Shown piece by piece: positions 13,101 through 49,200 of a DNA stretch of 64,000 nt (the stretch's first letter is position 1; each line of letters begins with the position of its first letter). The position numbers and the translations under genes were made by a program. The stretch lies in NCBI RefSeq assembly GCF_000150275.1, contig NW_002060943.1, positions 9,127,449 through 9,191,448 on the forward strand, written 5' to 3'. The notes under the pieces were generated by a model. The model was not told where the DNA came from, ran no database searches, and saw only the letters and a list, made by a program, of their open reading frames with translations. Source of the DNA: Trichoplax adhaerens (taxonomy: Eukaryota > Animalia > Placozoa).

Positions 13101-16100
13101 CTTTACAAGCCAAGCGAACTTTACGTCTGATAATTTCAATGCTATAAAAGGTAAGTAAATGTTAATTACTATGCTATTATTTCTATGATATCAAAGATCA
13201 CTCTATTTACATTCATCAATATGTAATTTGGCGAAAGTTGACTTAGCATATCCCAGGTAGTTTTGGGCTATGCAGTGATATTGGCCAACATCACTAGCTC
13301 GTAGTTCCGATATTACAAGCTCTCCAGTTTCAGTTATGATCCTTCTAACAGTTTGACTCACTGCGGAGCCATCCTTATACCATACATACGTTGCTTTCGG
13401 ATAGGAACGTGCAGTACAGCTAAATTTAACATTAGAGCCCAACGCCGCTTTACTAATATTCTTAGGTCTTCGTTTAAGAGATGAATCGATATCTATAGCA
13501 ATCATATCGCATGTAAATTACTATTAAACCCATAATATCTTAAAATGAACTGCAGCTTAGTTTCTTAACCAGCCTACATAAAATGCAAAACTTACATGCA
13601 ACATTCACGGACGCTATGTTGCTCAAAATCGACAGCTCGGTATGGTTGGAAATTATTCTACATTGATAAAATCCACTACAAGATTTTTTTACTTGCTTTA
13701 AAAGCAGCCCATCATTTTCTATTCTAAAATCACAACTACTATCCAAGTTATGACCGTCTTTATACCACAGAATTGAATGTGCATCCGAGTTTGGTTGGCA
13801 AAATAATTTTTTAGATAATTTTCGAGCGATGACAATATTTGCAGGCGATTTCTTGAACGACATGGTTTCTAAAATTATCCTGAACATTAGATAGCTAGAG
13901 ATACTATATAATACTGCATAACTTGGCACATTGACAGTACCGACTGCTTAAACTATTGTAAATTTTACAGCCGCATTTACATACCCTCCGATTGACAAGC
14001 AATGTTACCAGAGTGAACCCATTTTCCATTAATACACGTAAGTTTATTACCGCCGCTCAAATAGTATCCAGTAAAACACTTGATAAAAACGGAATCGCCA
14101 TTATTAAAAGTCCCGTAAATGGTAGCGTATTTTAAATCCGGTTTTGAACAGTTTCCTATAACAATCGTTACACGATTGATTAATGCAGATTACAACTTGT
14201 ACGCAATACCTTGAGAGATTATCATTTTCCTACCCAAACAAAAATTTTGTGATTTCGACCAAACTCCGGATGATTTACAAACAGTAGTATTGTATGCCGA
14301 TGAAGTAAGCTGATCTGGACAACTGAGGTTTGCGTGATCGCCTACATAATAAAACCTGCGTGAAGCTCTAAGATTCGGTGAAAACCAGTTGGGCCTCTGA
14401 CATGTAATATCTATTAAAGAAAAATAAAATTTAAAAGTCATTGCAGATTAGTTATCATCAAAGTTTGCTCCATGCTTACTAGAAGGAGTAAACTGAAACG
14501 ATGTCTGGGAAACACCATAGCCATTATCCACGAAGCATTGATAGATCGCAGGGAAATACAGCTGGTCAAATCGAACCTTTACGATATAAGAATTTAAAGA
14601 GGTGTTAAGGCTTCATTAGAATAACAATAAAGATCGGTCATTTGACAGTTAGACAATTTATACCATATACTAAAAGATATCTAACCGTTGTGGTGGATTT
14701 ATTCATTCCGCTAATTTGCATAGAATGGTCTTTCGTCGTATTGATTAGCTCTCCATTTCTAAACCATTTTACAACAGGCCTTGGATTTCCGGCCAAAATC
14801 CTACAGGTCAGGTTGTAAGAATGGTTTGCCTTTCCATTTATTAATTTAGGTATAGACGTGTTTATTTCCGGCCGAACTAAAACATAAACATTGACAGGCT
14901 GTCTTACTAAACAACGACATGAGCTAAAAGGCAGCATTAGTAGAGTATTTCAAATTTTCTTACCATGAACATTAAGACGTGCAAAGTGAGCTAGTGATTG
15001 GGTTGTATTTTTGTATGGTTGCGACGCTATACAGTAATAATTTCCACGATCGCTAAGAGTAACGTGGCTAATACGTAAGTTGTTTCCATGAACAATCGTA
15101 TACTTAGAAGACTCCCGTATATGAATAGTAGCATGATCTTTCTTCCATTGAATTTTCGGTGTCGGATTACCTATTACACTACATTCTATGATAACGGTAG
15201 CGTTGATACTTGCATTGACAGCGGAAGGCTTCGATACAAATTCTAAGGCTTGATAACCTGCCAAAATACGAATTAATGCGGTTTGTTATTGTAATATCCT
15301 CCAAAATGAAAGACTAATCATGATTATCGATAAGTAACATGTATTATGCATTTATAGTACAGTGACATTTCCAATGATACTCTTGTATCATGTCATCATA
15401 TATGAAGCAGTTGATTGTTTTATGCTAACCAATTTTACTTGTGACTACCAAGTCGGTAGGTAATGAGTAGGAACGGCCAAGTTTATCGATGGCTCCACAT
15501 CTATACCTTCCATAATCTGACAGATGTAACGGATAAATTTGAATGCCATGTGGCAAGGTAGCAGTCCGATTGTTAAAATAATAAACAAATCTATCTTCTA
15601 TTTCTTTTTCCAACCAAAATTCTAGTAATCGTCCATGTGAAGAAGGATTACAACCAATATATGCAATAGAACCTTCTATACCGACTGTAACATTTCTAGG
15701 TTGCTGAGTGAAGACGGGGCCGGCATGATCTATAAGTACGTTATCGAGTAATGCATATGACACATACATGATTGTAATCTAAGTAAGTCAAAATTTATTA
15801 TTGTGTGAAATGCAACGCTTCTAAGATATCATATTTTATCTTATTTTAAAGTAAATCATGCAATAGCTGAATTATTAAAATAATGAATAACTCCCCATCG
15901 GCTATTGCTGAAAGCTAAAGTATAGAATAACTTATAACCGACAGAGCAACATACAACCCTAAAGAATGCATTGAACGTAGTCAAGATAGCTGAATTATCA
16001 ACATGCAATGGTAATAAAGAATCGCACCAAATTTCGCTTACCGACAATACGGACACGAGCAACTCGACTTAAAATTACCATCGGCTCCAAGAGGTTAATA

Positions 16101-16368
16101 CCACGATATGTAAGGCTACATCGATATTCAATCAGACCAGGCTTAGTGAACATCACTGATAGCGTTCCATTGGGTAATAATGTATGGTGAATATCTGTCG
16201 TGGATAATTTTATGTCATTACGAAACCATTGAATACTCGTATTAACATTTTCGATCAGCCCATTAGGACAACGTAAGCGTAAATGTTTTCCAGGCACTGT
16301 TACGGCATCCTCAGGATAGCGATCACTGATTTCAAGGTAAGGTAACGGCACAGCTAGTTCGGCATATA
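7162..16368 (-). CDS. Single-pass Ig/Sushi/FN3 receptor, DCC/neogenin/protogenin-like (4 Ig - 2 CCP - 4 Ig - 6 FN3 - TM - cytoplasmic tail); 5' exon(s) unresolved
   Basis: Successive, mostly phase-1 exons encode Ig domains (C...W...YxC) at ~16040-16368, 15440-15730, 14965-15258 and 14480-14876. Two CCP domains follow (14235-14410 CQRPNW...CKSSGVWSKSQNFC; 13985-14156 CSKPDL...CINGKWVHSGNIAC), then four more Ig (13600-13868, 13212-13493, 12860-13142, 12500-12790) and six FN3 (9892-12390). TM exon ~9478-9627 reads VLFYIIGGVISGICLILMILSLLFY. Cytoplasmic exons are 9064-9310, 8288-8526 and 7162-7314, ending ...ENQETFV*. No signal-peptide exon was confidently found. Confidence 0.88.
14593..14680 (-). 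other. Candidate U12-type intron in receptor Ig4 (AT-AA; AT-AC or GT-AG alternatives possible)
   Basis: On the minus strand the 5' site is AG|ATATCTTT at 14680. CCTTAAC lies at 14610-14604 and an in-frame ...TTTAAA| end at 14593. Confidence 0.5.
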
Positions 16369-19300
16369 CTGTAAAAGAAAGAGTAGCACAAAGAGCATCA
16401 GCATTTAAGGTTGTTACGTTGAAGATATCTCTAAGTTAAGTAGGTAGTAATAGGGTTTCAGCGTGTATCAAACGTTTACTACTCACACCGAGACTGCAGA
16501 CCCATGAGTTTATATAGTACTGTAGTTTAATGCAACGTTAAAGAAATCGCATTCTATCATCGAACGCTTTTCGGTAATTAAAGATGAAGGCTATAATGAC
16601 TTTCCAAAATATTACAACGATGCTATGTATTGCGCGAGCTTTAAATCTGTATTACACATTACAGTAGTAATAACAGCAATAGTTTTATACTGTACATTAT
16701 TGAGAAAGATAAGACATCAAATTCAAATTAGCATGAGATCGTTATTTTATAGGGATGTGCTTGTACAAATTGTCAAAAAAGATCTACTGCAGTCTAGATT
16801 CTTTTAAGATCGGGTTGAAGTCAACATAAGGTCGTAGTTTCACGGGTTGTATTTTGTTCCAATTGTCAACAAGATCTACTGCAGTGTAAAATTTTCAATT
16901 TTATTGCGAATCGAAGGCTATTATTACTACAGCAAGCTTTATCTAATGATACAGCAATGCGGCATAACCCAACGCACAAGCGTCAATAGGCAACTTTTCA
17001 AGATATAAAGTAAGTTATATTCACAAGTTCAAGTTAGATGACGACGTGAGTACTACAGTATATGATTCGTGACGCTTACTCGCAGAATATTACTGATAAC
17101 TTTCCTTAGATTCAAGTATTGAAAGTTATTTAGTATCCACATCACAAGTACGACTTTCGATTTCAGTCTGCCTAATCCGATTTCTAGCTAGTGTAGCAGG
17201 CCATTATAGACTTGAATCCTAATAAACTACTGTAATACGACTGCAGATCACTAGGTAGATTACTAATAAGCTACATTGGACTACAAAATAGCTGTAAATA
17301 AACCTTCACATTATTCAAGTTATAATTGTAAACTACAGTGTACAGTAGAGCGTACATCTACCAGTGTTTTGCTTGATAGAACAGCTAAAAATGAAAATTC
17401 TAAAGGTTGTATAGGTATGGACGAGCAGCCAGTGCGAAAATTATGCATTATTATGGGTTTGGAAGTAAAGCTGCTACTAATTCATCTCTCACTCTATAAT
17501 CAACGCCAATCAATAACTGGTACAGCCGTCTACAGGCTCGGCAAAGCTGTTGCAGTTTTAGTTCTACGTCAAAGATTGCGTAGTCGTAGGATACCAAGTA
17601 CTGTACACTACCATAGTACATAGTACTGTAGCAGACAGACCTCAAAACAAATAAATCATTATCATCATAATGTCATAATAAGAAAAGAATTAATCATAAC
17701 GGTTCAGTACACAAAGTCTCCAGTTCTATATTATTTTCCATAATGCATTTATTACTTATGTTTACTTTGTTTTACCAGACTATACTTATCGACAATTTAT
17801 TGACCAGAGTTGCAGCAGTTAGGACGTAAAATGTATAGAATAATGTACACTACCATTTAGCTACATTTCACTGTTGTGTGGATTACGTAAGCATGTGTTA
17901 GACAACGAATCATTTGCGTATTTGCTTAATCAATTACATGGATGCTACCTTATATTAATCAATTAATTAGGAACGAAACAGCGGCGTTTCATTGCTGCAT
18001 CACTGTAATTTATGATTTACGACTGATTAGACTGAATTGCCACTTCGTGCTGCGTGCAGTGGATGATAAAGTACAGAAAAGTAATGAAACGCAAAATAAA
18101 TCATAAATCTCCTCGATGTAGCTTTGCGTCTTCTTTCTTCTTCTAATGTAGTAATAATTTAACGTCTACTACTGATCGACTACGTGTCTACGGTTCGGTA
18201 ATCGGTAGAGATAAAAGAGAAAAAAAGATCACGTTAATCGGAAAAACCGACGTAGTACATAGATCGGAGCAGAGACCAGTAAAATCTTGACATCAAGTAG
18301 AGTCAACAACTCCGATTATACAGTACTGTACCAAAAGAATCGACGCCTACAGACAGAAGCAAAGTTCAGAGCACTGCTCAAAAAGATTACCCTAGGCGAG
18401 AATCTTATTACGTATCAACGACGTCAAGATTCCACCTGTCATACTGTAACAAAATGGAATGAAAGTCTATGATGAATCAAGGACTACTAAAACAATATTC
18501 TTTATAGTCCGTGGATAAATTTTGACATCGTTATTACTTATACGTACTGTAGACCCGCTGTGAAAAATCCTTTTTTTTTATTTATAGACAGTACGGCAGC
18601 GCGTGCAGCAGACTAGCGTATGAGTGAGACCTGCTACGTGCAGTGCTGCCAGTGTGTGTACTGTATCGTACATACAGATTGTAACTATTGATGGAAAAAA
18701 TTGGGGTAAAGGGTCATTACTACATCGGCCAGTACAGTGGTCGCTTTACATTTTTGTTTTGCAGCATGATGACAAAATGATACAGTACAGCATAAATCGA
18801 ATGAAATCTAAATAAACTCAGAAACCAATGCACGTAGAAAACTCAAACTCAATTACGGAAAGGAACTTGGGCTATTATGTTGACTTCTTATCTATTTACT
18901 TTCCTTTTCTTTATTTGAGTAGTAACTCTCTCTAAAGGAGTTTTTACTGTACGCTTTCTAATGACGTTCAATACGTCCGACCGACATCAATAATATAATA
19001 AAATAAAAATTCAAATCAATCAATTTCCTGTAACTGCCAAGCAAGTAGATTTCTTGTGCAAGTCAAGCCTGCCATACAATTACTATGTCCACTTTATCTT
19101 TCATAATAGTTGTAGGTAAGAATGATAGTATTCATTGAATTTCATCGAGTGTAATGTACTGTACATTGTGGAAGAATTTTGGGTGATTATAACTCAAATT
19201 TTTTTTCCCCTGGAAGGGAATCCCCGCTATAATTGAGAAAAAAAAGTACTGTTTACGCATATTTTCGATTTTTGACTGTTTAGAATGTTGGGTCGACAGG

Positions 19301-20159
19301 AGACTGTAGACTGCAAACAATTGAAAACTGCATTGTACTGAGATTAGCACGTACAAACGAAATCACGCTAGATTAATCATATTACATTAATCCCTATGAT
19401 TTGGAAAGGATGCGAAGCGTATAATATAATATACCTAGTAGCGATGAATAATAATAATAAATTTAATAGCTATTATCATTGGTGGTGCGTCAAAAACATT
19501 TTGCTGGTTGTAACAATAAGTTATTAACTATAACAAAAGTTACTGTACAGTGTACGGTATGGACATTAAGCTTTATTAAAAAAGAATTTAGTGAAAAAAG
19601 CGCTAGAGTTCATGTAGAAGGAGATAGGATCCGGGTTTTGTTGTACAGAAAATTTTTATCCTCCCTCCTTTTCCCCCCAAATCGAAAAGGGTTGTATATA
19701 GTGCTATTCTATTCTTGCTCGAACTATTGTACAGTAGATGGCATTCTATTTTATAACACGGAAATTCATCGCCAATTATCGTCATGCTTTAAAATATCAT
19801 AATTAATAAAATTGTTTATCTTACCAAATGTTAGCCATATTAATAGATGGATAGGAACATTCCGAGAAAATTTTTGAATCATTCTCCAAAATTATACACA
19901 GTATGATAGAACTGGTGGTGTATTTCTCTTGCAGTCTTGCTATTTTCCGTCATCGACTGTCTTGACGAACCAACGTAGAACCTATTTTTGTACTAATACG
20001 GTAATATGGGACCATGTATGGCTTGTACTTGTATTTTAACCTACAGTATGTCTTGATATATCAATTAATCACAGCCGTGCTAGGGGAGTAGAGAGAGACC
20101 GGTCTCTAGGCGGTACCACCACCGTGTCAACGGCAACAAATCTACAGTCGGAAGTACTA

Positions 20160-20810
20160 GCAGTGCGGTACTACAGTACTGTACTGTACTGTACTGTTAT
20201 CGTGTACTGAATGAGTGTACGTACAGTGCATAGGTGGCTCATAAAACAATGCGTACGAACAATGAAAATTGTACTGTAGGATAAAATGCATGATAAAGAA
20301 AAAAGGCGTTTTTCTTTTCTTTTTCTTTTGCATACTGTACAGTACAGTACAGTAGAGATAAAAAGAAAGAAAGAAAAATGGCTATGCTTTTACAGTTGCA
20401 GTGCTGTACATGCATAGTTTTACAGATTTACCGTCATTTTTTGTGCCAATTTTTAGATCTTTTACCTCTCCAAAAATGGCTTCCAGTGTGCTGTATAGTA
20501 CTGTACAGTATACTAGGGTATTAGCTCTATATGGTACAGTGCACACTGTTTACGGTTAAAAGATTAATTTTATCTCTATGTTAACAAAGATAAAGATTAG
20601 CAAAGATGTAACAAAGATGTAACAAAGATAAAGATTACTATTGATGGACTTCAGACCTACATACTGTATTGTGCAGATTCGGATCCGGACCGGACCAGAC
20701 CATGAAGACCTGTACTGTACACTGTACAGTACAGTACTGCACTCCGCAGTCCACACTCCACAGTATCTAGTGTACAATACGTACTGTAATGTACGCTGTA
20801 AAGTACTGTA
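20160..20810. repeat. Degenerate CAGTA/TACTG array
   Basis: CTGTA runs at 20175-20196, 20333-20353 and 20710-20810. Confidence 0.85.
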
Positions 20811-22799
20811 CATACGGCAAGTCACGTGATATGTACGTCTCCCTAGCATACTGTTACTCGTAAGTCGTAACATTGGTCTTAATGGTCTTAATCGTCAACG
20901 TAACTTTTAAATATTGCCTTCCGCAAACTTCAAATTGCATTGTGTGGAGATTAGGTAAAGAGATAAATATTGTACATGGTGTTGCGATTACAGTCCATTT
21001 TCAAAGACTACAAATACAGTATCCCATTTTTCGCTTTATCTGCTCGTACTTGTACCAAACTGATGTTAAAATTGGTTCATCTGCGCGCCTGTCTGTACAG
21101 TACATGAATAGAGGGTTACCCTAGTAACAACTTAAATCAATCAATGGTTCCGCGTATCGTGCACTCGCATACAGGAAAGTTCGATAAGTAAATAAAACTA
21201 ACTGAAAGTGAAATTAGTATTTTGATAAGACGACGCCTCCGATCATGTAGGAAAGCGTTGGTATTTTTTTATACTGTGATACGTAGAATAAGTTAAAGCT
21301 TGTGATACTAAAGTACGATTAATTTATATTATAGTAATGCAATGGAATTTCATTCATGTCAGTATTTGCGCAGGCAGCTAAAACATCTGTTGTGACTTAT
21401 ATCAGTAATAATGATTAATTGAATTTAATACGGTATATTATATATTGATTGTTAACACAGTAATTAGCTGATAGTTAAGTACCCCTGCAAATGGAATTAA
21501 ACCTCATCACAAATGTTTAGGTATACGTAATACTGTACTTCAAGGGCTGATCAAGGATCATGCAATGCTATTGAAACTCTAGTTGTAAAGCAAGGTATGT
21601 AGAGATTAATTATGATTTGAAATCGATGTATACTTTATAAATCTCTGAGAAAATAATGATGCGCAGTTTGAATTCTTGTAATTAGTTACTTGATGATAAA
21701 TAGGCCCGGGTAGGGTACATTTCGATATATATATATTGTATATATACAGTATATAAATTGTACAATAGTTATTATTAAAATTCTTATCTGACTTATAATA
21801 AGGAGCCAAGATTACTATAGTAACTTGCAGTATAATACATTTGACGATCAATTTCAAGTTTTCAGCCAAATGAAAGTAAAAGTGAAGTGGTACAAGTACT
21901 GTACTGAAGATATCATCAAGTTATACAAAATCTTCAAGTATACTCTTATAGAATTTAGCTAAGACTAGCAACTCAACACACTGGTATTCCTCAATCATAG
22001 GGTAGAGCCATTGCCATCAACGCATTGACAGAAGCAAATTTCTCCGCATCTACAATAATTAGTTCATTTGTTAACTATATTCACTTCTCATAGTATAAGT
22101 ATCATGAGAGGTGACTGTACATGAAATATACAGGCTTAATAGCACAAGGTATACCGGATCATCAATGATTCAAATCTTTAATCTTTATTATCAAATTCTA
22201 AGCTAGCTTTTTCAAATTTTTATACCGAATATGAGAACCTTACAAAGTTATATTCAAATATAGCCATAGAAAGCAAACAAAAGCAACTACAGTAAACATT
22301 CTAACATCACATATAGCAGTATCTAGTAAATCCAATTTCGGTACTTTTATTGCCTATTAATTGAAACCTAAGACAAATTTTTGTTAACTACTATCCTTAA
22401 GCTAAGCGAATACTTACTATCAAATTTCAAAACGAGTTGATTATTTACCTTAGCTAGTTAGTATCTGCAATTAATAAATGTTGCTGTACTGCAGGTAGTA
22501 TCATATAAATGATGATCATAGTAAAAAAATTTAACTTAATGTAAAGCAAAATGGCAGCCAAAAGTAGCTACATACTATCATAGTCCCTAATCAAAGTCTT
22601 CAGGTATCTAGCATCGCCGTAGTTAAAAATAAATCGCAACCTCCCATGCACGTATAAAGTAAGGACTATTCAATATAGTTCCAGGTACGAGCGTTATCAT
22701 GTAGGCATTCAATTTAAGCATATGGCAGTTAATATGTGAAAATAAGAGTTGTAAAATCATTGATGACCAGTTAATCATTTAATTTAATGTACTTAATAG

Positions 22800-25700
22800 C
22801 TACTCGTCTTCATAACTTTCTATACTAGAGATATTCAGTTGTTCGCCACTGAACGAAGCAGATATGGACATGGTTGGACCATCGGAGCCAGGCATTGAAA
22901 AAATTCGAGAGCTGAAAAAATAATATTGTAACTGGCTGATAAACAAAAAATCTGCTTTATCGCTAATGTTTAAAATATGATTAAAAGACACTGTAGTAGT
23001 CATCTTACAGAGATTGTGACTTTTGTTCTGGAACTTCGTCTTCGGTTCGCATTACAACGTCTACCGAAATTCCACGTTCTAGTGGACTCGTATCTAATTT
23101 CTGCCTGGCTCGAACTTTATCTACCTAAGCAAACCATTCATAAACTCTAGTTATGTTTTAGTTATTAAAGATGTCATCCGCAGTACTTTACTATTGAGCA
23201 TAGAAGTAATAGCTGAATATCGCTGTAAAGGACTTTAATCATAATATTTAAAGAAAAAAACAAATTCTTTTTAACATGAAGGTCTCTATGTCACACTACC
23301 TACCAAATTAGCTATTCCATTACCATCACCTTTGTTAGACTAAGTAAAAATTTAAAATTATCAGGCAGGTTAAAAACTAGCATTCTTACAGTTAGAGTTA
23401 GCAAACACTTAATACCTAGGCGTATTTTACGCGACACGAGTAAAAATATACCACGTCAATGCAATATACTGTTTATGTAGTTGGCTATTGCTTCAGGAAT
23501 TATAGAAAGACCCGCTTATAATGAAGTTACTAACGCTACAATCAACATCAACGAGAAGTACTTGAACACTCATATCGTTTCAGTTAGAATTTATAGTACC
23601 TTTCGAAATTCATGTTTACGGATCATGACCCAGGCTCTGAATGTTATGAAGGTATAAGACAGAAATTGATGATTTGTCCAGTGAATAACGTAGTACAAAA
23701 CAGAACTGTACTTCACACATTACTCTTTAGGTATATTTATGGACTTTACCTCTGTGCCGCTTTTCGAATCCTTTCGGTAACTTCCCCTGTCCGTAAGGTA
23801 ATACCGAAAATATCTTCATGATATCTACCCCTTTCCTGTCGTATTGAGCGCATTGGCCGTTGATTAATCGTAATTCAAGGTCTTTAAATAGTAGTTGATT
23901 TCTTACCTTCATAGTTTTTACGTATTCTATAGCATCTTCTTGGTCGAAAAGTCCGTAGTCAATTAACAGGTTCTATTAATAGCAATAGTTAACCTAACAT
24001 CAGAAATCATGACAGACAATGAAAGACAGTAACAGAAATCGCTAGCCTGAACCTGAATCGTTCTTGAGACATCAGCTGCCATAGAGACATCACCACATAC
24101 ATAGATATGTCCGTCCTCATCTAAAATCGTATGTAATAAATCTCCACCGTGATCCTTCATTAAATCTTGTACGTATCGCTGTCGTAAAGATATTAATAAT
24201 GTTATTGCAGTCAGCAAAGCCGTGTTTAAAGGGCGTGATAAAATAAATAGAGCATTGATTATTACTAAATTATACTCGTTATCAAAGAAACACGGTTACA
24301 ATCTTAACCTTTTGTTGGCCAGGTTCTCTAGAATAGGCCTTGTGAACTACATCGAGTACACCATTTGTTAAACAATCTTTCAATTCGTCCATGTAAATAT
24401 CGTCCTTAGTTGATTCTCTGCATCCAAAGAATAACGTCATTTTACCAAATCTAGTTTCTAGATCTTCGTTTTCTGTAGGTGTTAATGGGGGAGTATCAAT
24501 GCCGGTTGGAATTTCAGTATCTTCATAATCTACAGAAATATGTAGCAATTTAGAACATCATTAGTTAAGGTTTTTAATTTTAGAGCAGAAAGGTTTGCAT
24601 ACATCATCGAGTCGAATCAGAGAATATGAGGATTGGAAGATTCACTATCTAATGTTTGTAAATTCTGTATGGCTAACCATCTTTACGCCACAGCTGAATA
24701 TAATATAACCATGCACGTCAAAACATCAAGCTAGTAGAGTGTACCTTTAGTAACCGTAACAGGAAATGCTGCTTCTCTATTCTTGTCTGCTAGTCTCTGC
24801 TGCCAAAAACTTCTAAATGGAGCAATTCCGGTTCCAGGTCCAATCATAATTATAGGAACTGACTGATCAGGCGGCATACGAAAACCGTGTGCTCTATTAC
24901 GAGATTGTATAAAAGTATAATGAGCATAGCTGATATTAAGATTTCAAATCATCTACAGAAGTCTATTTGCATCTAAAATTCCAATCTGTTGATGAACAAG
25001 CACTAGCAAATGTTGAAAGGTAAATATACTCTTAACCATATCAATCGGTCTAAGAATACACTATATTTGTGAATATTTCTTGCAGAGTATTAGTAACCTA
25101 CGGTACTGAGAACCGCATAGAACCGATCAAGTAGGCAACAGGGTTTCTATGGTACTAAATAAACATGTACTTAATATACCAATTACGCGGTATGAAAGGC
25201 TAGCTTCAACTTGGCAGTTCACGTCATTTACTAAGATTTAAACACGACTGTGCAGTATAGAACCGTAAAGAAAAACTAAACTCATTAGCCTACCGTTTTG
25301 CAAACAGAAGAAGGTCTAATAATAATACATAAAAACTCTGAAATACATTTGATTTGTTGCATTAATTCTCTTCTTTAGTTAAATGAGATTCTACTAATTA
25401 AATAAGAATACATTCATTAGCAGTATACTCGATCTAATTTACTGTATTTAGTTTTATTTCTTCGGGACTAGTAACAACTTTAGTTGAGTAGGAAACATCC
25501 CGTCAAACTACATCAATAAATTCATTCAAAAATGTATATGCAAATATTTGTCAGTATCTTAAATTTTAGATTTACTCACGCTCTTATAAAACATGGAACA
25601 CTTTCTCCTTCTTTTAACGAATTAAGCCAATTCGAACAAATACCACGACGTAGCTTACCTGACTTTGTGTGATAAGCAACTACAGATACCGTAATATGAA

Positions 25701-34390: not shown

Positions 34391-34419
34391 GACTTATGTC
34401 AATAACAGCATAACATAAA

Positions 34420-35130
34420 TACTTTCCCGAAAGCATGGCGTGGGCTGGGTCTATGGTCCGAGCGCTCTGGTTTCCACGTTTCCACCCGACTCAGAACTGA
34501 GTCAGACGTTTAGTCCAGTAGGGTACAGTGTACAGTACTGTGGAACTACAGTATAAAATACTGTAAACCACTGGACTGTACTGTAGGCCTGATCATTTTG
34601 CATGGATTTTTTTATACTGTACAGTACACTTCGTTTAAGCTGTCCTACTGATATACTGTACAGTACTGTACTGTACTGGCGTGTAGAGTACAGTTCCTTC
34701 CAAATACTTTTCCGAAAGCATGGCGTGGGCTATGGTCCGAGCGCTCTGGTTTCCACCCGGCTCAGAACTGAGTCAGACGTTTAGTTCAGTAGGGTACAGT
34801 GTACAGTACTGTGGAGACTACAGTACAGAGTACTGTACAGTTCCTTCCAAATACTATACTTTTCCGAAAGCATGGCGTGGGCTATGGTCCGAGCGCTCTG
34901 GTTTCCACCCGAGTCAGAACTGAGTCAGACGTTTAGTCCAGTAGGGTACAGTGTACAGTACAGTACTGTACACTATACTATACACTGTACATGCAAAGCA
35001 TGGCGTGGGCTACAGTATGGGCCGAGCGCTCTGGTTTTCACCCGACTCAGAACTGAGTCACAAGTTTAGTCCAGTAGGCTACAGTGTACAGTACTGTGGA
35101 AACTACAGTACAGTACACCACTGGACTGTA
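34420..35130. repeat. Complex tandem repeat, 4 copies of a ~130-nt core
   Basis: AAAGCATGGCGTGGGCT...GGTCCGAGCGCTCTGGTTTCCACCCGACTCAGAACTGAGTCAGACGTTTAGTCCAGTAGGGTACAG recurs near 34430, 34715, 34867 and 34996, separated by CTGTA-rich spacers. Confidence 0.95.
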
Positions 35131-37284: not shown

Positions 37285-40200
37285 ATGAGTTCAAGCGAAG
37301 ACGAAGCTTTATTGCAGCAATTAACAACAGAAGAGCTAAAGGAGCTAGGCGAATACATTGATCCGGAGGTAGGAATCAATATTTCTAAGTACCGCTTGAT
37401 AAAAGTAAGATTTAGCGTCAGGTTCAGGACTATTGCGTATTTCGTTCTTTTCATGATGAAAAGTCCTCTGATAAAGTAAAACGTAAATTGCTAGTAAAAA
37501 TGATATGTTACAGTTGCTAGTGATTATAATTTTTTAGATACGATACTTTGGATATCCAAAATATAATATTATGCAATTAGCGGCTGAAAACCTATTAAAA
37601 TATGAATACCTTGTCATCGCAATAACATGTATTAACAGCAATAATATAGGTACAGTATATCAGGGCTACGTACACTGTTTGTAGCCTGTGTAGTAGCGGG
37701 CTATATCGAGTCTCGAAATTCGATGTTAAGCTGTAGTTTAAGTCGTTTGTAGATGTTTTAGAGTGTAACATGTAATCAACAAGAGCAAACGTAAATCATT
37801 AAAATTTTTGGATTGTGAAAGCTTCCTAATTTGAAATAGTCTCTAATAATTCCCAAGTGTACGCGTATTGCAAAAAGAATGGACTTCTTAGCAGCCTGAT
37901 GTTGTTTAACCCATATTATACAAAATTCTATATTTACGCTACAGGCCTCAATGCAGCAGTTATTAGTAGTAGACTTAGGAAATATTAATAATTAGCACTT
38001 CATGAGGGTGCTAGTAGGATAACGTTGTACAGTTTGCATTAAAATTACTACAGATGCATAAATATGGTATACGATATCATCGACTTCTAGAAGTCCATGA
38101 TGATATATACGTAATTGCGTGTTTCCGCCATCACTATCCAGTATGCTATATACTGACCTACATACAAGATATAGTTAGCTTTATTTGGTATAGTCTAGGC
38201 ATGAAACAAAATTTGAATTGCTTTTATAAATGAATTTTAATTCGGTTCCTAGGATCAGCTGCTACCTGCTGGATACCGCCAGCCTGATCAAACAGAAAAG
38301 GAATTAACTGGAGCTTTTGATCGTCAGCATCTTTTGGACTATATGAAGGAAGAAGCGTACAAGTATGAAGACGATGAAGAAGTTGTTCCATACGAAAAAA
38401 ATGTTAAAAGAGGAAAGGTGTTTATTAACAAAAATAAACCTGAAATGCCTTCAAACAAGATTTTAGACTTTTCTGATGAACTATTAGCTGCCCTAGACAA
38501 TGCTACCGATGCTGAAATCGCAGACTTAGCCAGTTAGTTCACTATATTTACGTTTTAATCAATTTTTATTGTCTTATGAAGATTAGATTCCGCGATACTT
38601 ATCTGTTACAATATACTGCATTGTGTAGGTATTGTTGAATCAATTAAATTCTACTAACTATATTATGCGTATATTGGATCTTAATTATTAAAGGTTTAAT
38701 TGGTGTCCATGGGATAGTGTATCATCGTGACGATGATAGTGAAAGTGAAGATGAGCTGTCCAAAGAGAGACGCAAAAAAGGTATCTTATTAAATTAAAAT
38801 GGTAGCTACAGGACGTCGTATTTTATTTACTACTTCATGATAGCCTTGATGAACTTGGCAATACAATGGAATACAACTAATTAGAAATAGAGATTTCAGT
38901 AGTCCTTAGCCATACTCATAAGTAATGTGCCATGAAATGTCAATTTCTGACTCCGATTACGTAACAATTTAACCGTAATGTAAATATAAAGCTCAGTACT
39001 CCTCAATTACTCACAGAATCTATCTTATTTATAATGATTAAGCCACAGAAATGCGGCAATAGCTGAACAGTTTCAACGATCAATATTTGCTTGTACACTG
39101 TACATTATCACTAACGCTACAAGCATAGAATTAAAATCATGGTTTAGCTATATTAACTTTATGAAAAAATTCGGCATATTAGCTTAACAGTATATCTTTA
39201 ATAACCGAAAATAGCGTACTTACTACTATAACTGAATAGAAAGTGCATAAGCTTCATGTATTATGTATGCATATGGTTGATACCTATTGATTAATGTGAC
39301 ATCAATTAATTTCATCAAAAGGTATTGTGAAATATGCAAAGTCGCGTGTTGAAGTACCAGATGAGCCTGATAATGATACTGATATAGATGAATCTATCGA
39401 AATGTTGAGAAATAATGATCCTAACTTGCGAGTACTGAACTTAAATAATCACAAAGAGATTAACGACAACAAGTTATTGGAAGTTATCAAAGCATTGGCC
39501 AATAATACATCCGTAAAAGTAATTGCTTTAGTTAATACTAAAATGCGAGATCATGCGGCCTTGGTAAGTAACTCTAATTTTAAAAATTTGTATGTAGGAT
39601 GTGAAGATAAGAACTAGATCATCTCACTATTTACGAATACAATAATGTATAATAGTTATATAATATAATTAATTTATAACAAAGTTAATAGCGTGTACTA
39701 TACGATTATGTCGTATCTCTATTATGACTTAGCGATGCATTTGCGTTATTGCCTTCTTTAGGAACTTAGTAAGGCTTTGATAAAAAATTCATCGATAGAA
39801 GAGTTGAACATCGAATCGAATCACATTTCTACAATCGGACTGTCGGTATATGCACGTTTGTCTTGTTGCGATAGAATGATATTAATGACCAAAAATACTA
39901 CATTAACCCTCGATATCACTAATCCCACGAACGATACTAAAAAGGATTTTTTATTTATTTCACTTGGAAGGCCGTTGTAGCAACTTTAGCTACTAATACA
40001 ACTCTGAAATGTCTTAAATTAAGCAATCAGGTATGATTGCATAAAACGTCATTTAAGTATAGTTTCCGTTCTCTAAAATCTTGCCCTCCGTATTTGAAAA
40101 TTTTACGAAATGGAAGTCAATTTTTAGTAATTTTAACACGACATAATCACCTTTTAGAGTCAATCCTATGGAGCGAAGCTAGAAGAAGAGTCTGCAAAAG

Positions 40201-40459
40201 TTCTAGAGAATAACAAAACTCTACTAAAATTCGGTTTAACCTTTGGCTCTCCAGGCCCAAGGCAACTCGTGCATCAATACTTGTTAAGAAATAATGATTT
40301 CGGTAAGCCTAATGGAGTAAATAGTATCGTTTGAAAGCAACAACGATGAATTCGCTTAGATGCACTCACTACCCACTTCCAGAATGAAATGCTAAATTTC
40401 TCTTTTAATTTTATCTCAATCTAGCTCGAATCAGAAGAGTAGAAGAGGAGCAAGGTTAA
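37285..40459 (+). CDS. TMOD: Tropomodulin (actin pointed-end capping protein)
   Basis: N-terminal LTTEELKEL...DPE|DQLLPAGYRQPDQTEKELTGAFDRQHLLDY, KRGKVF and AEIADLA. LRR region EPDNDTDIDESIEMLRNNDPNLRVLNLNN, LNIESNHIS, LKLSNQ, NKTLLKFG and LLRNND. Ends RIRRVEEEQG* at 40457-40459. An upstream coding exon cannot be excluded (acceptor at 37267-37268). Confidence 0.95.
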
Positions 40460-40964
40460 CTATATCAGTTTGGTTTTTATACATTCGAATTTTTGACTGT
40501 AACCTCGGTTACTGTAACTGACAGTGATCTATAGAATCATAGATAGATTGCAGTTTACCCTATTTTTATTTTCTGTAAACGATTAAACCATCAATTTGAC
40601 ATATCTATACATCTATGCCGCTGAGTTTTATTTTTTAACATAGTTTACAATTTTGCCGAAGTACCTTCTCTTAGACGTGTATGCGCAGGATAATTCGTAA
40701 ACACTACCATATCGTAACTGGGTCTATAAATATTGGAACGTTTTATTTAATCTAACGTCTGCGTTATAAAATATGAATTCCTACGATATTCTAATGTAAC
40801 TGGTGTCTAGGAAGCTAATACTATCTGTAATTATAATAAATCATACTTTGTCAATTAAAAATGGTTTAGACGAAGGCATGATCAATCTGACTAGGAAAAC
40901 TGGAATAAAAAAACGCAACATTGCATCTTCATCTACGTAATTCAATCTACACTTTTTAGTATTT

Positions 40965-42484
40965 CTACGTCAATTTTTCATTCTTTTGACGATAAATTTC
41001 TTCGGTATATGGCCTGTATTTAATCGAAAGAAGACATTAATTATGCTATAGTGTAATGTAGTGTAGTACTGCTCATAAATTCTTCAAAATGCAGAAGGAC
41101 GTTACTTACTCTTCCAGTAGTAATCCTATCCAGTAGACCAAGTAAACAAATCCTGACATAATAATACCACATGGGCTAGCGGATCTAAAAGATAAATTAG
41201 CATTGCTATTACAGTAAATCAGCACTTGTCTTTACAGCTAATAGAGCAACAGCGGCTTAAAGAGTGATATGGATCAAGCATACAAACAAAAAATTTTTAA
41301 TGATTTTATAGGCTATGTATGTCTTTCTATTTACCGTAAAGCTAATCCCAGGAAATTTGAAGTTGACCCAATATACATTGGGTTATCAAAAATATTAAAT
41401 GGAAATGTTGTAACTCTCTCCTCCAGTAAGATTCCGAAATAATCACCTATATATATATATATATATATATAAATCAACAATTCTTTCAATTGTCGTTGGT
41501 ATAAAGTTTAGATTTTAGCTATCCAAATTTAACTATTCTTATTAATGAATTACTTTAAACTATAACTGTATAATCGTAATGATAGTAATACACTAAGAAT
41601 TCCAAATGAAAGTACAGTACGATGAACATTGAGCAATATAGTTCTCAGTGATTCAGCACTACAACGATAAAACTACTGCGGCTTAAAATATTGATTCATC
41701 AATGCGTCAATGATAGAATTATTGGTATATCGCGTTAATACGATATAATATAATAGCTAACCCAAGAAGGTTCCAGTAAATCCAAGCCTCCAATAGGACG
41801 TTAGTACTAAAATAGTACCAACTACCATTAGGGCAGTTCCAATAAATTTAAAACTTTCCTGATCCAAAAAGTCTGATTTCGGTTGAGCTTCAATTAGATC
41901 ATAAAACCTAAACAATAGCAAAATGTATCATATTTACAGTACTGTATATGGTACACGTTTGCATCAATTCATCCATAATTAATACAAATACAACTAATAT
42001 AATTTAAATTGAGACACTGATAGTATTAACACTGCCGCTTCTGTGGAATGAAAATTGGACCTCATCCAGAAAATTAAATTTACAAAATACTGAATTTTAA
42101 TGTCTTCAGCACATCACTATTTACCGATAGTCCCTATGAAAGCCTAACATTAATATAGTTAATCCAATAAAATAGCATCCAATATAATTTGAACCAAAAA
42201 TGCTCGTAAAAAACTTGGTTTTCATCTCCAAACGACCAATCTGATAAAATAATGTAATCAATGAAAGAAAAGATAAGGAAGAGCACCGCATCAGAAGTGA
42301 ATCGCGGGATCTTTTCAAAATTTAAAATGAACTGACTAGGAAAAGGTGATATGGTACTGTACTGTACTACAGTCTATTATTTTTTACTCACAACATTCCA
42401 ATAAAGAGGGCTCAATATGATAGTGCCCATGGCATATAACAAGCGCCAATCGTTAACGTCCATATAGCCATTTAAATTCTCCAT
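40965..42484 (-). CDS. PEMT: Phosphatidylethanolamine N-methyltransferase
   Basis: Six exons: [31 protein letters not shown]|IGRLEMKTK...|...[17 protein letters not shown]|[37 protein letters not shown]|SASPCG...LLLEE|[15 protein letters not shown]. These match the PEMT motifs GTFLGDYFGIL, FPFNxxDNPMYxGS and EEPxTxEIY. Confidence 0.95.
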
Positions 42485-44509
42485 TTGCGTCTACATGACA
42501 TAAAATAATATTACGTTGACTTTAGCTGTTTGCATGACCTAGCAATATTTCATTTAATTCTTTGCAATAAATCAGACGAGCCAATCTTTGCATACAGTAT
42601 ACGGCTAATAATTAAGTTATCCGTTTAATTAGAGAGATTAAGATTTCTATGGGTATTGCAATGTACTGTATAGAATCTGATTATTTTCGATGGCACTCTG
42701 TCGTTAAAAAATCAAAGTTGTATTCCGTTGAAATTCCTGTACAATATTTATATACAAGTATACCCGTAATTAGGCTACAACTACATACAGAATTTACCTA
42801 GTTATGGCTTCATTGAACTTCCATAATTTTATTTTTTCAGGGTGGCATAGAAATTAATCAGACTGTCGATGATACTGTGCAGTGTGGAATGTGCACAGTA
42901 CAGTGCAAGTATGTATACGAGCATACAGTATACTCGTGCATGCAGTAGCAGCAGTACAGTAATTATCGTTTGAGTATAACACGTATATAAACATATAAAG
43001 CGCAAAGAACGAATGAAACGAGAGTATAAACAGTTAAATGCATATCAAAATAAAGGATTTATTCAAAATTGTAAGTGTTTAGACATTGCAATTTCAACGC
43101 ATACTAGTATTAACTGTGACTTGAAAGGTTAGTGAACAATTACACTGTTTTTACCGCTAACGGTAGTCATTCAAGCAAGAGGTTTCAATAAAATTTGAAA
43201 TCTTGATTTCGCTATTACTATACAGTCTTGATACCACCAACTGTATTTATGTATTATATTTATTTTTTTAAGTTTTCAATAGCTCCGATAGTTGAAGATC
43301 GATCTGCAATGCAAATTCAGCATTCATTGCAGCATTGTAAAAATGCCGCTGCGTAATGCACCGTGGGCAGTAATGGTAATTTACAGTATACTACCTCGTC
43401 ACTGCGTCAGTTTGTCGATGTTGTATTCCTGCAATTTAAATTACTATGCATCTTGGATATGTGCTCAGGCAAGCGAAGATCACAAAGATTAGTCCAGTCA
43501 TTGTAGGTGCTATTAATATTAACAGTTGAATATAGATTATAGTACTCGTATACTGTAGCAATGACTGAGCTTGCTCAAGCTATTGATTAGTTTTCGTTTT
43601 AATGAACCCCCCAAAATGATACGATCCTATCTGGACTAATTGTCATTTTGATGGTCATCATCATCATCAAATGATGACGGCTATCCATGGTGTTGCTTTG
43701 TACGAGCAGTTTGTGCATTAATTTTTGCCTAGTCGATGGGTAAAGCAATCATCAGTCGATCAAGTTCGATCACAATTAAAGATGACTTGAGAAATAACGT
43801 TGAATGTTACTCCAATACCGAGAATGGCACATGATTGATTTGACGTTGTGAACATTCATCTCATGGTACAAAGCGTTGGCTGATACAGTACACTAAAATA
43901 CGACCATGATAAAATGCTCTACTTTAATGGCGTATTGTTACAATGAAAGGCTTTACCTTTTTAAGATTCAGCAATTGAAATGGTTGGCAGCAATCCAGTT
44001 GGACCGAGGTGCGTTTTAGATAGTCCTGTACTATTTCGAGCGACCTTTTCAACTCGAGCGGTGCTTTCGTCTACTGAATATTGTTGCAAGTTGTAACGTA
44101 CTGTACAGTTGCAGTGCCTCCACGAAAGGTCATCGGAAGCGCGACACGCCGAACCAAACGTGCAAACGTGGCAACTTTTACAATATTTATTTTAATATCA
44201 TTACTATTATTAATTAATTACTATTATTTTTTATTTCTATTCTACTGTATAGGATATACATATGTATTCTATTTGATTTTATTTCATTTTATTTTTCTAT
44301 TTTATCAGCTTGACATTGAGCCATCCAATGAAATTGCGTCTTCTTGCTCATTTAGCCAAGCTTTAAATCAGGTGTTCACCATTGTGCATAATTGACTGAT
44401 AGGAGGTAGTCAAAAATCTCTCTAGTTGAAGCTCAATCATCAAGGTCACGCTTCGTCTTCCAGATAGTGTCCACCAATGTTAGGAACACTGACATTTACA
44501 GTATATCGT

Positions 44510-45690
44510 ACTGTACAGTACTGCACAGAGCCACCAAGAACTTGCACTGTACACTGTACAATACCACGTGATCTTACCCATTGCAGATACAACCATTTTT
44601 GTATCAATTTGTACAAAATTGATCGCAAATGCATGGTTTTAATACTTTCGGTAAGTTCATGACGATTGGTCAGTACATTGTACTGTACTGCACAGAGCCA
44701 CCAAGAACTGTGCACTGTACACTGTACAATACCACGTGATCTTACACATTGCAGATACAACCATTTTTATATCAATTTGTACTGTACAAAATTGATCGCA
44801 AATGCATGGTTTTTTACTGTACTGTCGGTAAGTTCATGACGATTGGTCAGTACATTGTACTGTACTGCACAGAGCCACCAAGAACTGTGCACTGTACACT
44901 GTAAAATACTGTAGAACAATTTTTGCATCAATTTGTACAAAATTGATCGCAAATGCAACTGTCGGTAAGTTCATGACGATTGGTCAGTACATTGTACTGT
45001 ACTGCACAGAGCCACCAAGAACTGTGCACTGTACACTGTACAATACCACGTGATCTTACACATTGCAGATACAACCATTTTTGTATCAATTTGTACTGTA
45101 CAAAATTGATCGCAAATGCATGGTTTTTTACTGTACTGTCGGTAAGTTCATGACGATTGGTCAGTACATTGTACTGTACTGCACAGAGCCACCAAGAACT
45201 TGCACTGTACATTGTACAATACCACGTGATCTTACCCTTTGCAGATACAACCATTTTTGTATCAATTTGTACAAAATTGATCGCAAATGCATGGTTTTAA
45301 TACTGTCGGTAAGTTCATGACGATTGGTCAGTACATTGTACTGTCTGTACTGTACTGCACAGAGCCACCAAGAACTTGCACTGTACATTGTACAATACCA
45401 CGTGATCTTACACATTTGCAGATACAACCATTTTTGTATCAATTTGTACAAAATTGATCGCAAATGTATGATTTTAATTAGACCTGACTTTTAATACTGT
45501 CGGTAAGTTCATGACGATTGGTCAGTACGTACATTGTACTGTACTGCACAGAGCCATCAAGAACTGTGCACTGTACACTGTAAAATACCACGTGATCTTA
45601 CACATTGGAGATAGAACAATTTTTGCATCAATTTGTACAAATTGATCGCAAATGCATGGTTTTAATAGGTAAGTTCATAACGATTGGTCT
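44510..45690. repeat. Tandem repeat of ~7 copies, unit ~136-189 bp (mostly ~175 bp)
   Basis: GAGCCACCAAGAAC anchors lie at about 44528, 44696, 44873, 45009, 45186, 45362 and 45551. Units carry CCACGTGATC, ATTGATCGCAAATGCA and GACGATTGGTC. Confidence 0.97.
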
Positions 45691-45864
45691 TTTCAACCGT
45701 TTTACTTACAGTATAGAAGTTTTTACTAGTCAAGTATATCGAAGAAAATAGGATCACATGGTAACAGTACTGTCTTCTTCCTGTACTGTAGTCCAGTAGT
45801 CCATGATCCACTCCATTACGATGTTATACTGTACTGTACTAGTAGTCTAGCACACGAGTAGATC

Positions 45865-45900
45865 GCGCACGCGCACTGCCATCTGATGTTGCATAGCGAC
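45865..45900 (+). promoter_or_regulatory. Candidate NRF1-like site and RFX X-box upstream of TTC23-like gene
   Basis: GCGCACGCGCA at ~45865 and GTTGCATAGCGAC at 45888-45900, about 350 bp upstream of the predicted ATG. Confidence 0.45.
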
Positions 45901-46252
45901 CAGAATGAAATTGCCCATAGCTTTATCGGTGGCTTTATGATGCCAAATGATACAAGCTACTCAAGATTGCAATATTGCAGTGCGTATGTAAATATACACA
46001 CAACTACATTTAAATTGATGGCATCGTTGGTGTATCTATGAGACACTGGTATTATAAGTAAATTTGTACATTTCTGCCTACTACTACTGGAGTTTTATAT
46101 CATACTATATATTTCTCTCTTTTTTACTCAGAAGTTGTAATATTGCATAAAACTGTATTAAAGCTTGCAAGGGATAATATGTGTTTCTACGCTTATAGAT
46201 GTTAATTGATAGTGGAAATCAAGAGGAAATTAAACGTGTGACAAAAATTTAA

Positions 46253-49200
46253 ATGATGGAAGAGCGACGAGATGTAGGGAGTGACGAAAAGGCATATAAT
46301 ACCGAAGAAAAAAATGATGTAATACTGTTGCCATTTATCCCCAGAAAAGGAGGTGATAATACTCATATGATAGCAGTCAATATTTTTATCAGAACATAAT
46401 ACCAAAATATTCTTATTTTAAAATATGTAGTCCTAATCGTAGCATTAATGATCGTAACCAATGAATCGATGAGAACATGCTGATTAGATTCTAATTACAT
46501 GATTAAGAAATAGTCATAGCTTTGTTCGACATACCAAGCACTTCTACAATTTCCTCTTAGAAGTTTTTGGACATACCGTTAATTATATCACTAAACTCAA
46601 GTAGTTTTTAGGATTTACTAAATTCGTATTTTGGATCGATGAAATCTAGATAAATTCATAATACATTTTTAAATTTCCAACAATTTTCACAATACGCACT
46701 ATATTAATTATTAAAGCATTCAGGTATCAAATAACATTCAAAGAAATATTCATAATATGCAAAAAGATAACCTTAATATCAAATTAGAAAATATATGAGA
46801 TAGGCGAGAATTATATCTGATATCAAAGCTTACTGTAGTTTTTATTTATGTAGCTGCTTATAAGACAGAAAATACCAATTCGCTAAAACCTAGTGACGAA
46901 GCCATTGATCAGAAAAGTCAGAAAAAAGGTATCATCTAATGTAAAAATTAATGTTAACTATCTTGCATTAACTTGTAGAATCCGGAGCCAAGATCAATAA
47001 GCTCATAAATTGATAACATAAAACTTTTACTGACACTAGTGTAAACATTATTCAATTTTATCTATAAATACTAATTCCACTGAATTGATTTATAGTAAAG
47101 AAAGTGAATATGATACCACCCCTGGATTTGCTAATAGACTTGGAGCGGAAGATCTTACATAATTTGAAGGATAGAAAGGTTATTATAAGCGAAGAAAGAT
47201 TCAAAATATTAATTTTACGATTAGCGAAATTAAATCTGAAGTTTAACTGTAGCTAGAGAATTATATTCTATATCTTCATATTTCACTATTGGACAGGGTA
47301 TTATCATGAGCTCAATTCACTGAAATTGTATTGTAAATTTGTTGTAGAATGATACCTTAATAGACGATTTAGTCAGGTGTTGTGCACTAACAAGGATAAT
47401 ACATGGTGATGACAGCTATGAGCTTGCAGAGAATTACGTGCGATTAGCCCATGTATATTTGCAACTTAAAGGTACTATAACGAGATCATTTGTAACTATT
47501 TTATATGTGATAAGCCCGTAAAATTTTATTCTCTAGCCTGATCTTTTCTTGTTTTATATCGTTACTCTTCAATTCAAAGTTGACTGATTCGAACTAGCTA
47601 TTGTATACTTAATCCAGTTTAAAATTGAGATCTTATTTATCACTCTGCAGCAGCGTCTTTAATTAGCCCAGATTAAACTTTATTAATAGCGGTAAGTATC
47701 ATGTCTTGCTATTACAATTTAGTTTGATTTTAATATTAGGACTAGTGCAACAATCTATAATGCACGCGCAACGAGCAAATGATATCATTGTCCGTGGAAA
47801 ACAACTCGGTTTAAATTTCAATGATGATCGTAAATCGGTCCTACCCTTAACAATTGGAATCTACTACGTACTTGGAGTTGCATATTTACGTCGAAATAGA
47901 TATCTGTGAAAAGGAATGATAAAAAATTTTAAATTTAAAGTTACTTGTTAATATTTTCAATCGATTAGTAACAAAGTTATATTATATTGCAACATTCCGC
48001 CTGTTTCGTACTTTCCTTGATTTATTGATAACTATAAGGAAGCTAAGCTTGCTCTATTAAAAGCCGAAAGAGCCAATGGTGAATACAATAAACTAATAGA
48101 AGATAACGGCAGCGAATTCTGTGACGACATGGACATTAAGATCGCTAATACTTTAGGACGGTACGTAATTGTCATTGACTATAAGTACTATTTTAAATTC
48201 ATTTCTGTTACTTTTTTAAGAACGTAGCCAGTAATTTAATTAAAGCTGAAAATCATATTAATACCTACTTCTTTTATAACAGATTATGTGTGGCGCAAGG
48301 AAATGTAGGATTGGCTTTGGAATGTTATGAAAAGCTAGTCGATATGATCATTAAACTTAAAGGAGACGGCGCTGTCCAGCTTATTCCTATTTACTGGGAG
48401 ATTGGAAATATATCCTTAAGAGAAAACAATGTATTTGAACTTGTTCTCAAAAATATATATTGTTAATGAAAAATTTTCTTAACATGCGCCAAGCAGAGAA
48501 AATGCTCGCTAAGGGAAGTGGTAATATGAAAAAAGTGACAGAAGCTTATTTACAAGCTTATAACGTTGCTGTTGCACGGTAGGTTCTAAATTACTCAACT
48601 TTCCTTTACTTCTAAGATTTGATATTCTTTTTTACAGCATTTACGACTTACGATAATTACTTAGCAATTTGTATATAAATACCTTATAACTGTTTCAAAT
48701 ATTACAATTAGCAGATACATGTAAAGGCATTTAAAATTAGATAAATAATAATTATCTACGGGAATAAATATTATATGCTACCCCATACTCGTATGATTAA
48801 GTATGCGTTCTATAACGACGTAACCTGAAGACTAGTAGAAATTACTTATTAAGAATTTGAATACATATTTTACAAATATTTCTGTAGTTATCCAGCTAAA
48901 TCTCCTCAGATCGCCGACGCTTCTTATCGATTAGGGAAGGCATATCTATTGGAGAAGTCTACTGAATCAGAAAGTAACGTTCTAGAACTTTATTATCAAT
49001 TATTGTGGATCGCTTTAACAGCAATTATATAAGTTTAGATTTTAAGACATTAATACAATTCAGCTTTAGCAGATGAATATCTTCAGCGAAGTTATGAAAT
49101 TTATTCCAAACATGATGGATCAAGCTCGAACAAGTGCATAAAAATCCAGGTAATATTAGATCGTTGAATCTAATAATCGAATGATCAGCCTCTTTAAATA

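Follow-up and report, generated by a model that had tools for sequence, protein, structure and literature searches.

Does the minor (U12-dependent) spliceosome of the placozoan Trichoplax adhaerens close its introns as in other animals? The question is raised by a stretch of 64,000 nucleotides (contig NW_002060943.1 of assembly GCF_000150275.1, positions 9,127,449 to 9,191,448 of the forward strand; hereafter the window), where three candidate introns of the A-type, that is minor introns of the form AT-AN, end in AA. The original prediction took them for a possible lineage-wide AT-AA splicing system, and its descriptions of the three sequences are correct. Introns 1 and 2, in a TPR-repeat protein gene, are joined as AT-AA in RNA; for intron 3, in an Ig receptor gene, the sequence makes the same ends no more than probable. 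Very likely the two introns of the TPR-repeat gene are AT-AA introns handled by ordinary A-type U12 machinery, with a relaxed and AT-biased last base, and AT-AA is common in this genome without being the default. In placozoan A-type minor introns AT-AA is peculiar by its quantity and does not amount to a lineage-wide system. In the literature searched, no report was found on the termini of placozoan minor introns.

Introns 1 and 2 of the TPR-repeat gene

46253..50242, forward strand: TPR-repeat protein gene of 15 coding exons, with 12 GT-AG and two AT-AA introns, defined by RNA contig joints; the name TTC23 is unconfirmed
47900..48031, forward strand: intron 1, putative U12-type, AT-AA, 132 nucleotides (nt); 5' site ATATCTGT; RNA joint
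48410..48492, forward strand: intron 2, putative U12-type, AT-AA, 83 nt; 5' site ATATCCTT; RNA joint

The joints were read from the assembled contigs (Logan) of four RNA data sets, from four studies, aligned to positions 46000-51000. The data sets were picked from a run search in which five were RNA-like, with a word share of 0.22-0.27 that fits exon-only content. In two of them (X18 and X16) contigs pass from 47899 directly to 48032, skipping 132 nt that begin with AT and end with AA, with no ambiguity in the position of the joint. The same product occurs in X19, aligned one base over, as 47900/48033, with a mismatch. The joint 48409 to 48493, which skips the 83 nt of intron 2, is likewise AT..AA and unambiguous, and was found in X18, X16 and X19. 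AT..AA joints of the gene are hence found in three of the RNA data sets, which bear two organism labels between them; the remaining 13 listed joints are all GT..AG. When the RNA-defined exons are joined from the ATG at 46253, the frame remains open to a stop near 50240. The junction of intron 1 keeps the frame as N-S-Y, and intron 2 lies in phase 0, as GN|AE. Joints and open frame together imply that two of the three AT-AA introns are real, and two of the three junctions for which a check in RNA had been proposed read AT..AA as anticipated.

To judge from their signals, introns 1 and 2 would depend on the minor spliceosome. The A-type 5' consensus is ATATCCTT, in which one of C5 and C6 may be T. 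Intron 2 matches it perfectly. The 5' site of intron 1 shows two departures (+6 and +7), yet the RNA is spliced there. The branch box of intron 1, TTCCTTGAT, spans 48013-48021, with the branch adenosine at 48020, and the ...GATAA end lies 11 nt further on; an out-of-frame AC is found at 48031-48032, 1 nt past the AA end. In intron 2 the branch box TTCTTAAC spans 48476-48483, the branch adenosine is at 48482, and the ...GCCAA end lies 10 nt further on. Here too a canonical dinucleotide follows by 1 nt, an AG at 48492-48493, again out of frame. In all three candidates of the window the branch box has the features by which A-type introns are recognized, since it resembles TCCTTAAC, lies 10-15 nt before the intron end and is not accompanied by a polypyrimidine tract.

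What the gene encodes is seen less sharply than how it is spliced. The exon at 47742-47897 gave weak TPR-like matches in the atlas, and a Pfam scan of three exons of the gene returned no match. Just upstream of the gene, at 44512-45666 of the window, there is a tandem repeat of about 6-7 units of approximately 176 nt, which are 85-93% alike. At 46248, 5 nt before the ATG, a run of A is one base shorter in the RNA contigs of X16 and X19 and full in a contig of X17; the likeliest cause is an indel between strains, located in the 5' untranslated region.

Intron 3 in the Ig receptor gene

14593..14680, reverse strand: intron 3, candidate U12-type AT-AA intron of 88 nt, interrupting an Ig domain in a large receptor gene of the Ig/FN3 kind; 5' site ATATCTTT; predicted from sequence

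Intron 3 is probably a U12-type AT-AA intron as well. Its 5' site equals the consensus with C6 changed to T, and its branch box CCTTAAC (14610-14604, branch adenosine at 14605) lies 12 nt before a ...TTTAAA end. Splicing at these sites would fall at the second of two AAs that overlap, and would produce a junction reading V-S-SYIVKV, in frame and preserving the Y-x-C motif of the Ig domain.

It is possible, if less probable, that the region holds a major-type GT-AG intron at 14685-14577, in which the ATATCTTT and CCTTAAC boxes are coincidental, or that both overlapping introns are used in a twintron-like manner. The AT-AA intron may indeed compete with the GT-AG intron, or be replaced by it. 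An in-frame GT-AG pair exists, with the donor ACG|GTTAGA at 14686|14685 and the acceptor AAAG|GTT at 14577|14576, and CCTTAAC, 27 nt before the AG, may act as a branch site of the major type. Donors that begin with GTT are no rarity, being found in two of the 12 GT-AG introns of the neighbouring TPR-repeat gene; in turn, all 12 acceptors of these introns are TAG or CAG, whereas the GT-AG model would use AAG.

The protein products point in different directions. Between the Trp and the second Cys of the Ig domain there would be 40 residues in the GT-AG model and 47 in the AT-AA model, against 35-39 in the seven sister Ig domains. The upstream exon covers positions 6-56 of the Pfam I-set profile; the second Cys of the I-set consensus we take to be at position 73, and the 17 positions left up to it equal those of the GT-AG model. 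In contrast, the strand E residue, Leu or Ile in six of the seven sister domains, would be Val in the AT-AA model and Thr in the GT-AG model.

A protein search with the Ig exon was dominated by giant Ig proteins, and one useful relative emerged, a 79-residue open reading frame from ENA metagenome contigs (P0142/P0151), evidently genomic, which is 54% identical to the exon upstream of intron 3. After the exon the relative reads M|V-S-L, corresponding to GTA-(AGT or TCC)-TTR, with no ATATC within 33 nt. This reading implies a GT donor, either major or G-type minor, at the place of GTTAGA. On the side of the AT-AA model, shifts of splice sites during U12-to-U2 conversion are known (PMC2846911). 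Against coincidence, a rough estimate puts at about 2 per million the chance that a major intron holds, in frame, ATATCTTT, CCTTAAC and an A-N end 9-13 nt further on. We keep the AT-AA intron as the preferred reading of this site; the claim of three AT-AA introns in the window stands for introns 1 and 2 and becomes a likelihood for the third.

In the receptor gene (window 9478-16435, minus strand), which also has two Sushi-like exons and FN3 exons, seven Ig domains are each encoded by a single exon, and an intron interrupts just one Ig domain, that at 14876-14482.

A-type introns across the genome

Whether AA is a frequent end of A-type introns was assessed in the whole assembly (105.6 Mb, 1414 contigs), by collecting matches to ATATC(C/T)TT followed by (T)CCTTAAC with no condition on the 3' end. 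Matches to the strict patterns are not enriched over reversed-pattern controls. ATATCCTT followed after 40-70 nt by CCTTAAC has 10 matches versus 13 in the control; the same pair at 71-160 nt has 51 versus 40, and ATATCTTT followed after 30-160 nt by TCCTTAAC has 24 versus 40. Enrichment is also lacking for ATATCCTT with TTCTTAAC, and for GTATCCTT with CCTTAAC. Most matches are therefore due to chance, minor introns are rare here, as in other animals, and motif counts alone cannot size the class. Junctions were fixed by the flanking open reading frames and by homology. The following introns were retained, given with the distance from the branch adenosine to the intron end.

AT-AA, PPP6C-like phosphatase (L029): 10 nt; reads ...GAFC-D-LVWSDPEE, the downstream piece corresponding to PP2A 197-224
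AT-AA, Rab-like GTPase (L043; G000:C1410:8258751-8258616, minus strand): 20 nt; the upstream piece covers Ras profile 32-59 and the downstream piece 60-99, with no gap at E|R
AT-AA, DEAD-box helicase (L053): 11 nt; single open frame, motif VI upstream
AT-AT, BMS1 (L084): 10 nt; upstream piece ends at human residue 838, ...MFDA, and the next exon reads E-YDEG
AT-AC, VPS16 (L009): 10 nt; Vps16_N downstream, VPS16 268-287 upstream
AT-AC, NHE and its tandem paralogue, counted once (L031, L030): 11 nt
AT-AC, ALG3 (L041): 10 nt; ALG3 profile 293-340
AT-AC, CCCH zinc-finger gene (L062): 11 nt
AT-AC, two introns (L058 and L085): 11 and 9 nt; placed by reading frame only

The tally is four AT-AC introns (plus two placed by frame only), three AT-AA, one AT-AT and one ambiguous, a RhoGAP intron (L063) that may end at an AA at 10 or 13 nt, or at an AC at 16 nt. 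AT-AA amounts to 3/8 of the A-type introns supported by homology, or to 3/10 when the frame-only cases are included, that is to some 30-38%. In this sample about one third of A-type minor introns end in AA, some in AT, and about half or more in AC. The sampled AT-AA introns are cut after the first AA found at least 9 nt past the branch adenosine, though the sample is too small to make this a rule. A further AT-AA intron, outside the tally, interrupts LIPT1 (C1414:3250519-3250416). It reads ...NGTSK|ATATCTTT...TCTTTAAC CAGCCGGAA|ATATCTGGTTCAGCT, so that the protein continues as K|ISGSA, and ends 10 nt past the branch adenosine.

A number of matches were set aside. A midasin match (DEISLADD, L036) and a myosin match (TK-HILNYL, L007) lie within coding exons, and eight sites (L003, L006, L010, L026, the second site of L030, L035, L050 and L074) were left out for want of homology. 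A codon-usage score trained on long open reading frames added little to what stop codons tell. Within the window, the U12-like sites at 13535, 38781, 47270, 58689, 21913 and 10079 either have no coding context or fall inside a proven GT-AG intron. The earlier remark that no GT-type U12 donor is seen holds for the window, where a lone GTATCTT at 38781 lacks coding context, and does not extend to the genome. The NHE gene L031 hosts, along with its AT-AC minor intron, a G-type candidate (rc 2125, G000:C1404) that reads GTATCCTTG...CCTTAAC, with an AG 12 nt past the branch adenosine. Two other observations were made on the way. A candidate with ATATCCTT...CCTTAAC and a possible AT-AT end is identical in L001 and L003 (G000:C738 and C1397), and reflects either a duplicated gene or an assembly duplicate. 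In the myosin gene L007 (G000:C1412, at about 592 kb, minus strand; rc 1942-2183) a GTATCCTAC donor follows ...GGKITD, and the coding sequence resumes in a microexon of 14 nt, AT TTG TTA GAG AAG, read as Y-LLEK, whose AG lies 28 nt past a CCCTTAAT box. Either the 5' site is U12-like and its 3' site lies far off, or the intron is of the major type.

How unusual the tally is can be judged from conserved animal minor introns, of which 74.2% are GT-AG, 21.8% AT-AC, 1.12% AT-AA, 0.95% AT-AT and 0.89% AT-AG (PMC10639083, Table S1). From these shares, AT-AA makes up 4.5% of A-type introns. At this baseline the probability of finding at least three AT-AA introns is 0.004 for eight introns and 0.009 for ten. 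AT-AA is strongly enriched in Trichoplax as compared with animals generally.

Enrichment does not make AT-AA the default. It had been proposed that AT-AA is the default A-type class, as a consequence of a changed recognition of the 3' site (ZRSR2, Prp8, U5 or U6atac context). We regard this as improbable, though it is not without support. Three of three candidates in the window end in AA, the two introns proven in RNA do not chiefly use the canonical AC or AG that lies only 1 nt downstream, and the U6atac of Trichoplax carries GCCGA in place of the AAGGA of most animals, within the segment believed to base-pair with the 5' site. In the unbiased sample, however, AT-AC introns (VPS16, NHE, ALG3 and the CCCH zinc-finger gene, or six with the frame-only pair) are at least as common as the three AT-AA introns. 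AT-AA is accordingly not the default, and its description as a major class is right insofar as it is enriched, and wrong if meant to say that it outnumbers AT-AC.

The components of the minor spliceosome argue in the same direction. The check covered U11, U12, U4atac, U6atac and CENATAC. Genes for all four minor small nuclear RNAs (snRNAs) score above the Rfam cut-offs (U6atac 104.8 bits, U12 97.3, U11 99.2, U4atac 58.7). The branch-pairing stretch of U12, AUGAGUAAGGAAAAU, corresponds to the consensus. CENATAC/CCDC84, which in humans promotes minor introns of the A-type (AT-AN; PMC8280824), has a homologue encoded at C1414:1382722-1385706. An inspection of the snRNAs had been suggested in search of lineage-specific changes, and GCCGA in U6atac is the sole peculiarity found. 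This "CC variant" was described in 2008 in Trichoplax, cnidarians, a sponge, Acanthamoeba, Physarum, moss and oomycetes (PMC2396436); it is therefore neither new nor specific to placozoans, and it bears on the 5' site rather than the 3' end. AA ends are, moreover, accepted by ordinary minor spliceosomes (PMC3584512, PMC8280824). The contention that AT-AA implies an altered 3'-site recognition is hence not borne out by the components covered, and nothing in the evidence demands an altered machinery at the 3' site.

The U6atac gene of Trichoplax is part of an array (G000:C1402:438491-439592; L011 528-1629, minus strand). A full-length gene is followed head-to-tail by five 5'-truncated copies, which start at model positions 29-70 and end at positions 116-126.

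The opposite objection, that there is no real enrichment and that we are looking at rare variants sharing a gene, with a share inflated by small numbers or wrong junctions, also has little probability in our view. It draws on the fact that two of the three window cases reside in one gene, and on a set of points which weigh against our reading at large. Only 8-10 introns were sampled, which leaves the AT-AA share with a 95% interval of about 7% to 75%. In view of the strict motifs' lack of enrichment, real introns had to be chosen by coding context, which is partly a matter of judgement; junctions outside the window were placed from sequence instead of RNA, several of them by motifs conserved in established protein families. 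The Rab-like intron ends 20 nt from its only good branch box, where 10-15 nt would be usual. At introns 1 and 2 there may be minor use of the adjoining AC or AG, since Logan contigs drop rare variants, and a lineage-specific change may lie in ZRSR2, Prp8 or U5. On the other side stand the probabilities of 0.004-0.009 given above for three AT-AA introns in 8-10, and that of 0.002 for the two RNA-proven cases together; the three sampled AT-AA junctions and that of LIPT1 are, in addition, fixed by protein motifs that do not vary or by the continuity of a profile.

Least of all can the AA ends be ascribed to one-base assembly errors that disguise a true AC or AG: no unspliced contig covers either intron end in the TPR-repeat gene, so that the last bases of introns 1 and 2 are known from the assembly alone, but such errors would require independent one-base deletions at exactly two ends of one gene and would have to recur at the PPP6C-like, Rab-like, DEAD-box and LIPT1 introns, the RNA on the exon side matches the assembly without ambiguity, and paired errors are very unlikely, all the more since AA ends recur at other loci.

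Last base of A-type introns and known systems

The U11/U12 di-small nuclear ribonucleoprotein reads the 5' site and the branch box jointly. In the model proposed, it would recognize an ATATC(C/T) 5' site together with a (T)CCTTAAC-like branch box, and the 3' cut would be placed at an A-N dinucleotide approximately 10-12 nt past the branch adenosine; in introns 1, 2 and 3 the distance is 11, 10 and 12 nt, respectively. The last base would not be strictly read, and A could replace C. Relaxed constraint, combined with AT-biased mutation, would then have changed the last base from C to A, and sometimes to T, in many A-type introns served by the standard machinery. The genome is AT-rich, and the G+C content of the window is about 34%. 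The model is in keeping with what is known of minor introns, where distance, optimally 11-13 nt, is the main factor that sets the 3' site, non-canonical termini are functional, and the choice of the 3' site is error-prone in the ordinary minor spliceosome (PMC3584512).

On balance we lean towards a broader view, according to which placozoans have the highest known share of AT-AA (and AT-AT) among animals, about one third of A-type introns versus less than 5% elsewhere. The last base would be effectively unconstrained, with paralogues and relatives swapping AC, AA, AT and GT-AG at one position. If about one third of the A-type minor introns of the phylum end in AA, predictors limited to GT-AG, GC-AG and AT-AC must mis-model dozens of conserved placozoan genes, among which the TPR-repeat gene and those for the PPP6C-like phosphatase, the Rab-like GTPase, the DEAD-box helicase, BMS1 and LIPT1 are at risk. 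Surveys based on annotation would in that case undercount placozoan minor introns and misjudge their conservation. With an unconstrained last base, Trichoplax would offer an experiment of nature on the placing of the 3' cut by the minor spliceosome, and natural AC, AA and AT variants at homologous sites could be exploited to probe the roles of branch distance, of ZRSR2 and of the contact between first and last base.

Placozoan A-type introns may be compared with several known systems. Canonical AT-AC introns of the U12-type share signals, genome and gene classes (VPS16, NHE, ALG3) with the AT-AA introns, and have in the placozoan sample a distance of 9-11 nt from branch to end. The last base alone differs, being A and sometimes T, and intron 1 skips an AC one base further on. 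In humans, AT-AC, AT-AA, AT-AG and AT-AT introns form one functional class dependent on CENATAC, in which those not ending in AC are few (PMC8280824); Trichoplax has a homologue of this factor. Overlapping U12/U2 twintrons, such as that of Drosophila prospero (PMC3584512), offer a parallel for intron 3, a candidate by sequence, where U12-like and GT-AG sites are likewise nested in frame.

A further term of comparison is Physarum polycephalum. Its minor-spliceosome system is transformed and its minor introns massively expanded, as Larue, Elias and Roy are said to have reported in 2021. In Trichoplax, by contrast, minor introns are rare, and only their 3' terminal base is relaxed. The two organisms have in common unusual minor-intron statistics and the CC variant of U6atac (PMC2396436).

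AT-AA minor introns of other organisms have the same ATATCC-like 5' site, the same branch box near the 3' end and the same AA terminus as the placozoan ones. AT-AA is the commonest non-canonical terminus of minor introns in both kingdoms (Larue and Roy 2023, PMC10639083). Each AT-AA intron of Trichoplax, taken alone, is thus a known rarity. The novelty rests in their frequency, since elsewhere AT-AA makes up 1.1% of the minor introns conserved in animals and 4.5% of those of the A-type, as against about 30-38% of the A-type in the Trichoplax sample.

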